Positions 7,101 to 10,100 of a stretch of 64,000 bases of DNA are shown here, piece after piece. The position numbers were made by a program, and so were the translations under genes. Below the pieces are notes generated by a model. The model did not search any database. It was not told the origin of the DNA and saw only the letters and a list, made by a program, of their open reading frames with translations. The stretch lies in assembly GCA_002269645.1 (NCBI GenBank), contig NIVC01000215.1, positions 682,001 through 746,000 on the forward strand, in the 5' to 3' direction. Numbering within the stretch: the stretch's first letter is position 1; each line of letters starts with the position of its first letter. The DNA is from Macrostomum lignano (lineage: Eukaryota).

Positions 7101-10100
7101 ACTAATTAACTAACTTAAGTAACTAAACGAACTAACCAACTAACTAACTAACTAATTAATTAATTAACTAACTAACTAACTAACTAACTAACTAACTAAC
7201 TAACTAACTAACTAACTAACTAACTAACTAACTAACTAACTAACTAACTAACTAAACGAACTAACCAACTAACTAACTAACTAATTAATTAACTAACTAA
7301 TTAACTAACTTAACTAACTAAACGAACTAACCAACTAACTAACTAACTAACTAATTAATTAACTAACTAACTAACTAACTAACTAACTAACTAACTAACT
7401 AACTAACTAACTAACTAACTAACTAACTAACTAACTAACTAACTAACTAACTAACTAACTAACTAACTAAACGAACTAACCAACTAACTAACTAACTAAT
7501 TAATTAACTAACTAATTAACTAACTTAAGTAACTAAACGAACTAACCAACTAACTAACTAACTAATTAATTAATTAACTAACTAACTAACTAACTAACTA
7601 ACTAACTAACTAACTAACTAACTAACTAACTAACTAACTAACTAACTAACTAACTAACTAAACGAACTAACCAACTAACTAACTAACTAATTAATTAACT
7701 AACTAATTAACTAACTTAACTAACTAAACGAACTAACCAACTAACTAACTAACGAATTAATTAACTAACTAACTAACTAACTAACTAACTAACTAACTAA
7801 CTAACTAACTAACTAACTAACTAACTAACTAACTAACTAACTAACTAACTAACTAACTAACTAACTAACTAACTAACTAACTAACTAACTAACTAACTAA
7901 CTAACTAACTAACTAACTAACTAACTAACTAACTAACTAACTAACTAACTAACTAACTAACTAACTAACTAACTAAGTATCTAACTAACTTACTAACTAG
8001 CTAACTATCTCTCTCTCTCTTAATTTTAGCATTTTACTTTCTGTTTCGAAACATCGAACAGATCACCATTGGTTCGTTTCAAGACGTTCTTACCACCGTG
8101 ATGACCGTCTTCCAGATGACTCACGGAGAATTTAAGGTACAAAATTAACTAAAAGTACTTTTAATAAAAATTTGTATGGTAATCAAAACAAAAAATAACG
8201 TAAAAACACAAATTTCTTGCAGATGTCAAAGGGCGAGTTTCTAATTAAGGTAAGAAATAATTAACTTGAAGGTTACATTGACTTTCATAATTCACGGGCC
8301 ACTTTGAAGACTTTTTTCATAATTAGTTGAACAACATTATTTTTTTAAAAATGCGCTTTAATTTCAATGTCTTAATTCAGAGGTGATAACTCTCACAGTC
8401 TCTTCCCAGCTCTCTTCTCTCTAATCTCTTCTCTTTTCCCTCCTCTCCTCTCCTCTCCTCTCCTCTCCTCTCCTCTCCTCTCCTCTCCTCTCCTCTCCTC
8501 TCCTCTCCTCTCCTCTCCTCTCCTCTCCTTGCCTCTCTCTTCTCCTCTCCCTTCTCATTTGCTGGATTCTCTATCTGTGGCCCTTGGAGTAAAAAAGTTT
8601 GTACACCTCTGCAGTGGTGGAAGCAATCAGAAGCTCTCAACTCTCTCACGGTTGTAAACTCTGAAGATGTTCCTCAAGGTGGCGAAGGTGGGTCTCTCCT
8701 GTTCGCTTGAGTGCCAGCAGGCCAGCATGATGTTTTTATACAAAAACTCGTCGCATCGAATGCCCTGCTGCTCATTGTGCGGGTTCAGCATTCGATGGCC
8801 TTCCGAAACCAGCTTGAGAATCGCTTTGTTCTGATGCTCCTGGTACGGAACCCGGCCTCGCGTCACGACCTCGTAGATCAGGACGCCGAACGACCACACG
8901 TCCGACTTGTTGGTGAACACCTTGTCGGTCGCAGCCTCCGGAGCCGTCCAGCGGATGGGGAACTTCGTGTTCTCACCTGCGTCATACACGTCCTCCTCAA
9001 TGAGGCGGCTCAGCCCGAAGTCGCCCACCTTCACCACGTTCTCGTGTCCAACGAGAATGTTGGCGGCTCTCAGATCTCTGTGAATGAACTTCTTCTCCTC
9101 GAGGTAGGCCATTCCGTCAGCGATCTGGAACAGCACGTCAAGCATTGCGCCATACGTTATTTTCCTTCCGTTCTTCTCGTCGTTCCTCAAGTACGACAGC
9201 AATGCTCCGTTGGGCATGAGCTCGGTGACGATGTAGAATGGCTCCTCGGTGGTGCACACTCCGAGCAGTTGGACAATCTTTGGGTGGTGCAGTTGGTGCA
9301 TGGTTTGGGCTTCGCGAATGAACTCGCCCTTGTTCGTATCTTGGACAAAGCTTTGGTCTAAACTACCTGAAAACAGGCAGTCCGTAGTGCTTTTTTGTTT
9401 TACTGCTCAGAAACGCACTTCGTTTCGGAAATGCTTAGGAAAACTTAGTGTGTTTTCTGTTTTAACGACAGGACTTCCTTCAGATTAAAAATACAATTCA
9501 TCCAGTTTTCAAATCCTCGTTGTTGTTTCAGTACGCAGAGTTCAGCTACACCAACTATCCGCTGATGTCCAAGTGTGTATTCGCCATTTTCATGATAATC
9601 ATGCCTATCATGCTGCTGAACATGATTATCGCAATGATGAATCACACCTATTCGACCGTGAATGCCCGATCGCAAAAGGAATCGATTGCTATGGTTCGTG
9701 GTGACGATTTACTCACTTTCTGACTGTATCTAATAAGTATTTTTTGTGAGGGGATGGGCACCTTATCTCAACGGTAGAAACTATAATATAAACAATATTG
9801 GGGCATTGAGATAATGGACCGCAAAATTCGGGACCCGGAATTATTCGTCAATAAAAATCGGGAACTGGAATCATTCGTCAATAAAAATCGGGAACTGAAA
9901 TCATTCCACAATAAAAATCGGGACCTGGAATCATTCGTCAATAAAAATCGGGAACTGAAATCATTCCACAATAAAAATCGGGACCTGGAATAATCCCACA
10001 ATAAAAGTCGGGACCTGGAATAATCCCACAATAAAATTCGGGACCTGGAATCATTCCACAATAAAAGTCGGGACTTGGAATTATTCGTCAATAAAAATCG

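Follow-up and report, generated by a model that had tools for sequence, protein, structure and literature searches.

The analysed stretch of Macrostomum lignano DNA (hereafter the window; 64,000 nt) contains a TRPV channel gene, the kinase genes Src A and Src B, and a fragment of Src A that lies inverted within a TRPV intron (Table 1). The two TRPV exons on either side of this region join seamlessly and match residues 551–636 of the Drosophila TRPV channel Inactive (E 1.6e-21). A longer query retrieved TRPV5/6-like, OSM-9, and Inactive matches, and the paralogous loci are annotated with Ank and Ion_trans domains. By these matches, the host gene encodes a TRPV channel of the Inactive/OSM-9 branch, of which the N-terminal 108 residues are encoded upstream of the window. 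A microexon with the splice sites cag (upstream) and gtaaga (downstream) lies between the two exons. The fragment had been placed in the intron between exons 8030–8136 and 9532–9693 in an earlier note; its intronic position holds, but the microexon at 8223–8249 had been missed, and the host intron is therefore 8250–9531 and not 8137–9531. A (CTCCT)n microsatellite is found in the same intron at about 8440–8530. Src A is adjacent to the TRPV gene and encodes a protein of 547 aa with SH3, SH2, and tyrosine kinase domains. It carries the N-terminal MG myristoylation motif of Src-family kinases, and its matches include SRK2, Src, Yes, and Fyn-like proteins.

Table 1. Features of the TRPV–Src A–Src B locus; positions refer to the window unless a contig is given.
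Feature	Position	Strand	Remarks
TRPV gene (Inactive/OSM-9-like), portion in window	1133–14194	+	residues 109–910 of paralogue P0241
TRPV exon, end of S5 and pore region	8030–8136	+	match to Inactive
TRPV microexon, 27 nt (MSKGEFLIK)	8223–8249	+	found in annotated paralogues P0241 and P0242
Host intron, 1282 nt	8250–9531	+	53% is fragment; exon/microexon mapping
Inverted partial copy of Src A kinase exon	8663–9338	-	repeat search, base comparison, Pfam
TRPV exon, pore and S6 (LLNMIIAMM)	9532–9693	+	match to Inactive
Src A	17130–18845	+	exon 1 17130–17984, intron 17985–18056 (72 nt), exon 2 18057–18845
Parent segment in last exon of Src A	18131–18806	+	begins 74 nt past exon start, stops 36 coding nt short of stop codon
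Mismatches, fragment/Src A (eight)	9336/18133, 9308/18161, 9293/18176, 9251/18218, 9245/18224, 9172/18297, 9136/18333, 9044/18425
Src B	20931–22588	+	528 aa; BOX15_Mlig022589g1
Fragment in locus L002	NIVC01000421.1 17279–17954
Fragment in locus L003	NIVC01003384.1 17196–17871

A repeat search and a base-by-base comparison revealed that the fragment is the ungapped reverse complement of the parent segment, with 668 of 676 positions identical. The two inverted arms are 99% complementary over 676 nt each and are spaced by 8792 nt; a near-perfect match of this length cannot have arisen by chance. The earlier description of a reverse complement of about 675 bp with ~99% identity to Src A is thereby confirmed, with coordinates (8659–9335 and 18133–18810) that were off by 2–4 nt and with eight mismatches in place of the "~7" diagnostic SNPs reported. 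According to Pfam, the fragment covers positions 41–256 of the 258 positions of the PK_Tyr_Ser-Thr profile and lacks the kinase N-lobe, with neither glycine loop nor VAVK lysine present. Its kinase sense is on the minus strand, i.e., antisense to the host TRPV gene, and the frame on this strand is still open (259 aa, 8630–9406). An unspliced TRPV transcript would, as had been proposed, hold 676 nt complementary to the Src A mRNA. The proposed complementarity to Src B in patches was also borne out: the Src B segment 21874–22549 is 81.5% identical to the fragment, with perfect runs of up to 75 nt, and has 168 of 656 21-mers in common with it, compared to 527 of 656 for Src A.

The earlier note had further called the insert a copy of the Src A mRNA, which does not apply. 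The fragment comes from within one exon and lacks a poly(A) tract, and therefore nothing points to an RNA intermediate. As it also ends 36 nt before the stop codon and shows neither a target-site duplication (TSD) nor UTR homology, we rejected a retrocopy or processed pseudogene. A larger duplication with decayed edges was rejected as well, since no homology was detected past the fragment ends: in gapped local (Smith–Waterman) alignment, both flanks matched those of Src A with scores no higher than shuffled sequences gave. Capture by a transposon (Pack-MULE- or Helitron-like) was rejected because no terminal repeats, TIR, or TSD were found and no second copy of the flanks exists in the window or in the loci compared. 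A third Src gene on the minus strand was likewise rejected, as a tblastn search with Src A returned Src A, Src B, and the fragment alone. No match to a structured RNA family of Rfam was obtained anywhere in the window, and a literature search for the locus tags Mlig012503, Mlig007901, and Mlig022589 found no paper. The fragment is a DNA-level pseudogene fragment of Src A.

The whole TRPV–Src A–Src B locus is duplicated on two other contigs, each of which carries the fragment in the same intron. We therefore compared three loci, all from assembly Mlig_3_7: the window (W, NIVC01000215.1), L002 (L2, NIVC01000421.1), and L003 (L3, NIVC01003384.1). The sequence of a further locus, L001, begins just downstream of the intron and was left out of the comparison. 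The insertion junctions are identical in the three loci on both sides of both ends, and the flanking intron is orthologous. As these junctions recur on three contigs that each carry variants of their own, the insert is not a misassembly, which answers a concern raised earlier, and the insertion predates the split of the loci. The arms are spaced by 8.8–12 kb across the loci. Within each locus, fragment and Src A differ by 8 (W), 9 (L2), or 9 (L3) mismatches, compared to 27–29 mismatches between the fragments of different loci (29 for W and L2) and 25 between the Src A genes of W and L2. Nineteen sites group the sequences by locus, only one groups them by type, and none supports the third pattern. 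The sole type-specific site, with C in all fragments and T in all Src A genes, lies 3 nt from the repeat edge, which is rarely reached by conversion tracts. In the window, all mismatches fall within the first 295 nt and are followed by an identical block of 381 nt; an uninterrupted match of this length has a probability of about 0.011. This clustering agrees with a mosaic built from conversion tracts that differ in age. The 99% identity in this locus does not imply a recent duplication.

Substitutions by locus that are common to both arms comprise 12 synonymous and 7 non-synonymous changes, far from the ratio of roughly 1:3 expected without selection, and therefore appear to have been filtered in Src A. 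The changes specific to the fragment are mostly radical and clustered (ITYRA to IKFCE in L2 and L3), which argues that the fragment itself is without protein constraint. Between W and L2, the fragments diverge by 4.3%, close to their parents (3.7%) and below the surrounding intron (7.6–11%, plus large indels), and the fragment therefore seems to have inherited the constraint of its parent. Divergence at synonymous sites of Src A amounts to 8.2% in the same comparison. No indel was found in the 676-nt fragment in any of the three loci. Src A itself is under ordinary purifying selection, with a pN/pS of 0.26 inside the repeat and 0.26–0.27 outside. Only 2 of 1644 nt differ between the Src A genes of L2 and L3; both lie in the repeat (positions 525 and 528), are non-synonymous, and show in L3 the state of the intron copies. 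This looks like a short tract that was transferred from the copy to the gene.

Taken together, we consider it probable that the fragment is an inverted partial duplicate made at the DNA level, inserted once and long ago, kept alike by gene conversion, and neutral or nearly so. Part of the last exon of Src A would have been duplicated in inverted orientation into the TRPV intron about 9 kb upstream, in a single insertion before the three locus copies of the neopolyploid M. lignano genome diverged. Repeated non-crossover gene conversion between the inverted arms would then have overwritten one arm by the other in each locus, mostly from the selected gene to the fragment, with at least one short tract seemingly in reverse. 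Conversion of this kind would hold the fragment at 98.7–98.8% identity to the Src A next to it and would preserve an open, indel-free frame in what is no functional coding unit. For inverted paralogues that lie close together, gene conversion has been well documented (PMC3966223, PMC3403216); as the mechanism here, and in its main direction, we infer it from three loci as they stand in a single assembly. Exchange with the adjacent parent gene would also account for a near-identity that had seemed recent or purposeful, and no function is needed for it. That the fragment is selectively neutral or nearly so is our best estimate, with neutrality a default rather than a result.

The fragment could instead be a working regulator, a reading that we regard as unlikely. 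Antisense RNA from the TRPV intron would pair with the mRNA of Src A and partly of Src B, or a TRPV–Src A read-through transcript would form a long hairpin, and Src would be repressed in TRPV-expressing cells by an endo-siRNA, ADAR, or piRNA route. Since the fragment lies antisense inside the TRPV transcription unit, pairing with Src A mRNA is physically possible; orientation and complementarity are as needed, and a duplex of 670 bp with a dG of −1471 kcal/mol is predicted for fragment RNA and Src A. The species has Dicer-2, Argonautes, and four RdRPs (PMC5594548), and precedents exist in Drosophila hpRNAs (PMC10317233, PMC10292708) and pseudogene-derived esiRNAs (PMC3616710). With regard to read-through, the TRPV gene and both Src genes run in the same direction, UniProt model A0A1I8IIT8 joins all three as one gene, and the TRPV–Src A spacer of 2.9 kb, about 2 kb of which is minisatellite, comes near the repeat-adjusted 1-kb operon criterion of the species (PMC8629364). 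The indel-free retention at three loci could reflect selection to keep the antisense arm intact as well as conversion from a constrained donor, and gene conversion fully accounts for both identity and integrity. Moreover, retention since a recent polyploidisation is no evidence of selection, intronic RNA is nuclear and short-lived, purifying selection on Src A is ordinary inside the repeat as outside, and the piRNAs reported from M. lignano preferentially target transposons (PMC4604429). A regulatory coupling of TRPV transcription to Src is speculation. Its fullest form, for which we see a slim chance, is that each round of TRPV transcription would yield RNA against Src A (and patches of Src B) that feeds Dicer, Argonaute, and RdRP and damps Src, with conversion keeping guide and target matched.

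It is very unlikely that the fragment serves as a gene-conversion donor and thereby supplies the kinase domain of Src A with variant residues. The two sites, and no others, at which the Src A genes of L2 and L3 differ, adjacent to each other, non-synonymous, and matching the intron copies, would suit such a role, yet they represent one putative event, and any benefit is wholly speculative. The equal pN/pS inside (0.26) and outside (0.27) the repeat does not suggest that changes arising in the fragment have entered Src A steadily. We assign a still smaller probability to a technical artefact, in which misassembly or mis-mapped polishing reads produced the insert or the similarity by locus. All three loci come from a single assembly, Mlig_3_7, whose chimeric scaffolds make up 36% of its length (PMC10733133). 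However, the junctions shared by the three contigs are set in diverged, unique intron sequence, and polishing errors would homogenise to the most covered variant instead of giving 19 sites that covary strictly by locus. Highly improbable is also an exon of a nested antisense gene for a truncated kinase-like protein. The minus-strand frame is open in all three loci (255–259 aa), with the stop and the short extensions past the repeat common to all, but conversion from an intact gene accounts for an open frame. Such a protein would lack the N-lobe with its glycine loop and catalytic lysine, no further Src-like exon occurs on the minus strand, and the radical, clustered changes specific to the fragment speak against it. 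In addition, the annotation of the two paralogous loci has no gene at the fragment, and the exact ORFs on the minus (224 aa) and plus strand (216 aa) are absent from the records of the assemblies searched. Independent recent insertions, one per locus, are scarcely credible: each copy is nearest to the Src A beside it, but all loci agree in the insertion site and in where the repeat begins and ends within Src A, the intron is orthologous on both sides, and the edge site separates copies (C) from Src A genes (T) throughout.

The preferred reading of a single old insertion kept alike by conversion places the locus beside closely spaced inverted paralogues that evolve in concert through intrachromosomal gene conversion, like the inverted hsp16 modules of C. 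elegans (PMC3966223) and the Y-chromosome palindromes (PMC3403216), in which arms a few kb apart are likewise far more similar than expected from their age, changes covary within the locus, and repeat edges escape homogenisation. Here, in contrast, one arm is non-coding, truncated, and located in the intron of another gene, the arms measure 676 nt and are 8.8–12 kb apart, and the comparison is among three paralogous loci within one neopolyploid genome rather than between species. The features of concerted evolution found are a single origin, likeness within the locus, and a mosaic of tracts with unhomogenised edges. Pseudogenes are known as conversion donors from CYP21A1P, which converts CYP21A2, and from the pseudo-V genes of chicken immunoglobulin loci. 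As in these cases, a non-functional sequence apparently gave a short tract, here changing two residues in the Src A of L3; unlike them, the tract represents one inferred event with no phenotype and no sign of programmed or recurrent use.

Small-RNA loci offer a second comparison. Like Drosophila hpRNA loci (PMC10317233, PMC10292708), the fragment is an inverted part-copy of a coding gene, near and highly complementary to its parent, and thus shows the extensive target complementarity of hpRNAs and endo-siRNAs. In hpRNA loci, however, the arms are adjacent and form one hairpin transcript whose siRNAs and targets have been shown experimentally, whereas the arms described here lie in two different genes. 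Pseudogene-derived endo-siRNAs are exemplified by those of mouse oocytes. As with psiPPM1K (PMC3616710), antisense RNA of the pseudogene might bind the mRNA of its parent in trans; pseudogene endo-siRNAs rest on sequenced small RNAs and knock-downs, while the antisense strand of the fragment would exist only as intronic RNA.

The locus thus provides a clean, small case in which a functional gene evolves in concert with a pseudogene fragment in the intron of its neighbour, and which can be read directly from three subgenome copies. For M. lignano, this means that local conversion can mislead the dating of paralogues and the mapping of reads. The tract that Src A of L3 apparently received from the copy suggests that a parent gene can have its coding sequence changed by a fragment of this kind. 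If small RNAs against Src A were shown, the locus would add to the rare examples from animals, beyond those of Drosophila and mouse oocytes, in which a gene-derived antisense arm lies within, and is driven by, another gene, and conversion would maintain the match between guide and target.

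A repeat search of the window revealed one long inverted repeat with arms of 676 nt (8663-9338 and 18131-18806; 99% complementary, 8792 nt apart), and a second, weaker partner of the first arm at 21874-22548 (82% complementary). The first arm, hereafter the copy or fragment, lies in a TRPV intron, antisense to the second, its parent segment in the Src A gene. An ungapped base-by-base comparison yielded 668 identities in 676 positions. All eight mismatches fall within 9044-9336 of the copy (18133-18425 in the parent segment), and the other 381 nt are identical; for eight mismatches placed at random, a mismatch-free run of this length has P ~0.011. 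Similarity is lost abruptly at both ends, and gapped local alignments of the copy flanks to the Src A flanks scored no higher than shuffled sequence. Repeat search and alignment confirm the antisense Src A copy described in an earlier note on this DNA; its coordinates required slight correction, and one microexon had been overlooked.

Aligning P0241, an annotated paralogue of 910 aa, with the window recovered the + strand exons of the TRPV gene, from 1133 to 14194. When joined, the two exons flanking the copy match residues 551-636 of Drosophila Inactive (TRPV; E 1.6e-21), and a longer query retrieved TRPV5/6-like, OSM-9 and Inactive proteins. P0241 and P0242, the annotated paralogues, both include the microexon; the Drosophila Inactive alignment works without it, and it may be specific to the lineage or subject to alternative splicing. 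Given its position, the host intron is 8250-9531, 53% of which is formed by the copy. The parent segment lies wholly within the last Src A exon, beginning 74 nt past the exon start and stopping 36 coding nt short of the stop codon. The copy spans positions 41-256 of 258 of the Pfam domain PK_Tyr_Ser-Thr, without the glycine loop and the catalytic lysine. No further Src-like pieces beyond Src A, Src B and the copy were found within the window. Protein searches gave their best hits in Macrostomum lignano, and window 10931-32588 matches NIVC01000215.1:692931-714588 (assembly GCA_002269645.1, Mlig_3_7) at 100% identity. Src B is the only gene on record for that interval; the apparently intact Src A and the TRPV 3' exons are uncalled in this contig and annotated in both paralogous contigs. 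Long micro- and minisatellite arrays (periods 4-42 nt, up to ~2 kb) dominate introns and spacers throughout the window; the arrays differ widely in length from one paralogous locus to another, and several produce spurious long ORFs. Two opposed arrays of a 21-nt minisatellite give rise to many inverted-repeat pairs (90-150 nt, 93-96%), and similar units also occur at the end of L001.

Positions of genes, exons and repeat arrays in the window
Feature	Position	Strand	Remarks
TRPV exons flanking the copy	8030-8136 and 9532-9693	+	seamless join
TRPV microexon	8223-8249	+	27 nt, MSKGEFLIK, good splice sites cag/ATG...AAG/gtaaga
Src A	17130-18845	+	547 aa; SH3, SH2, tyrosine-kinase domains
Src A intron	17985-18056	+	72 nt, the one interruption of the gene
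Src B	20931-22588	+	tandem paralogue; identical to M. lignano protein BOX15_Mlig022589g1
PKA type II regulatory subunit	57279-58628	+	single 449-aa frame; RIIa dimerisation and two cNMP-binding domains
21-nt minisatellite, two arrays	26381-26724, 27120-27489		opposite orientation, ~400-800 nt apart
Micro-/minisatellite arrays, examples	1-988, 4015-4489, 4948-6233, 6753-8007, 9823-11223, 11582-13602, 14674-15851, 44386-46310, 47005-48982, 62004-63474

The neopolyploid genome of M. lignano comprises three subgenomes, S, L1 and L2 (PMC10733133; also PMC5704211, PMC7013459). Two further loci of the same assembly, L002 (NIVC01000421.1) and L003 (NIVC01003384.1), keep the gene order of an endo/exonuclease-phosphatase gene, TRPV, Src A and Src B; the window may represent the S subgenome, and L002 and L003 the two L subgenomes, an assignment with which the data are consistent. 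The same TRPV intron holds the 676-nt antisense fragment at 17279-17954 in L002 and at 17196-17871 in L003. All three loci share the bases directly outside both junctions, within orthologous flanking intron, which rules out misassembly, a caveat of the earlier note, as the origin of the insert, and shows a single insertion older than the divergence of the loci. Separate insertions are not credible, since each would require the same nucleotide and the same end points.

After such an insertion, and without exchange, a copy should differ from its parent at least as much as from the other copies. A mismatch matrix over the 676 nt revealed that in each locus the copy is nearest to the local Src A, with 8 differences in the window and 9 each in L002 and L003. 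The window copy differs from those of L002 and L003 at 29 and 27 positions, respectively, and the Src A genes differ at 25 positions between the window and either locus. Nineteen sites pair copy and parent by locus, one by type, and none follows the third pattern; the sole type-specific site (C in all copies, T in all Src A genes) lies 3 nt inside the repeat edge. Polishing artefacts would not yield such strict covariation by locus. Own-locus resemblance despite an insertion before the split therefore points to gene conversion that has acted repeatedly, in each locus, between the two inverted arms. We consider it fairly likely that the fragment is an old inverted partial Src A duplicate in the TRPV intron that was homogenised with its parent through local gene conversion, and that is probably neutral.

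Between the window and L002, the copies diverge by 4.3% and the parent segments by 3.7%, compared with 8.2% at Src A synonymous sites and 7.6-11%, plus large indels, in the intron flanks; the fragment thus evolves as its constrained parent does, unlike the surrounding intron. The 19 by-locus substitutions comprise 12 synonymous and 7 non-synonymous changes, a ratio that reflects purifying selection on Src A and suggests that the flow was mainly out of the gene and into the fragment. Changes specific to the fragment are for the most part radical, and they cluster (ITYRA to IKFCE in L002 and L003), so that the fragment itself is free of protein constraint; its open frame (255-259 aa) is accounted for by copying from an intact gene. 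Of the eight differences between copy and parent (18133-18425), four are changes found solely in the window's Src A, and three of these four are residue changes (E to D, N to Y, H to Q); at these sites the copy, Src B and the Src A genes of both paralogous loci retain the older state. Between L002 and L003, Src A differs at only 2 of 1644 coding positions, 3 nt apart and both non-synonymous (S to N, L to Q). These are repeat positions 525 and 528 (segments L002 30009-30684 and L003 26829-27504), at which the Src A of L003 has the state of the intron copies of both loci. Most simply, this pair would represent a short conversion tract from the copy into the functional kinase gene. Src A pN/pS is 0.26 within the repeat and 0.27 outside, and thus gives no sign of sustained inflow of fragment-born changes.

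Regarding its origin, no poly(A) tract, target-site duplication, terminal inverted repeats or UTR/intron homology were found at the fragment, and its flanking sequences occur nowhere else in the window or the paralogous loci. Since poly(A), target-site duplication and UTR homology are missing, it is not a retrocopy or processed pseudogene, as the earlier note's description of it as a copy of the Src mRNA would imply. It shows no hallmarks of a transposon-captured fragment either, with neither terminal inverted repeats nor a target-site duplication and with flanks unique in the sequences compared. Most likely the fragment arose as a templated insertion in inverted orientation, during repair or replication. 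Inside it, 9269-9285 resembles 9341-9357, just beyond the right junction, over 17 nt with an exact core of 8 nt, TTGGACAA; this may be microhomology left by the insertion, or chance.

The earlier note further proposed that TRPV transcription could repress Src through antisense RNA (endo-siRNA, ADAR editing or piRNA). Its physical premise holds at the sequence level, as 676 nt of the + strand TRPV pre-mRNA would be complementary to the mRNA of Src A. The intermolecular duplex is predicted to comprise 670 bp (-1471 kcal/mol vs about -350 for shuffles), and 527 of the 656 21-mers of the copy match Src A perfectly, 168 Src B. M. lignano encodes Dicer-2, several Argonautes and four RdRPs (PMC5594548), and its piRNAs are abundant, with transposons as preferred targets (PMC4604429). 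An estimated 15% of its genes are in operons, inferred from a repeat-adjusted spacing under 1 kb (PMC8629364). TRPV, Src A and Src B are co-directional, the TRPV-Src A spacer (14195-17129) is 2.9 kb long, ~2 kb of it minisatellite, and the UniProt model A0A1I8IIT8 joins the TRPV C-terminus, Src A and Src B in one protein, either as a prediction artefact or as a hint of read-through or operon transcription. A read-through transcript with both arms is therefore conceivable. A possible splice acceptor (...ttgtacag) precedes the Src A ATG by ~48 nt. No ORFs exactly matching the fragment are on record in the assemblies searched, no genes are called on it in the annotated loci L002 and L003, and an Rfam search of the window gave no match. 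Orientation and complementarity to Src A fit antisense pairing. The purposeful-looking near-identity and integrity are by-products of conversion, and a neutral fragment, too, would be expected to persist across the subgenomes of so recent a polyploid. We regard regulation of Src by the fragment as improbable. Src-family kinases modulate vertebrate TRPV1 and TRPV4; this says nothing of the present gene pair, and the adjacency of TRPV and Src may be coincidental.

The fragment has evolved in the manner of inverted paralogues that lie close together and are held in concert by gene conversion (PMC3966223, PMC3403216), with all three features found: single origin, by-locus covariation, and a tract mosaic with unhomogenised edges. 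It resembles hpRNA and pseudogene endo-siRNA loci (PMC10317233, PMC10292708, PMC3616710) only in parent-gene complementarity; their hallmarks are co-transcribed arms, Dicer-dependent small RNAs and target de-repression, and the fragment is not classed among them. The finding is mainly a tidy example, from a neopolyploid, of a gene and an intronic pseudogene fragment that evolve in concert, and the fragment also provides a specific, cheaply testable small-RNA hypothesis.
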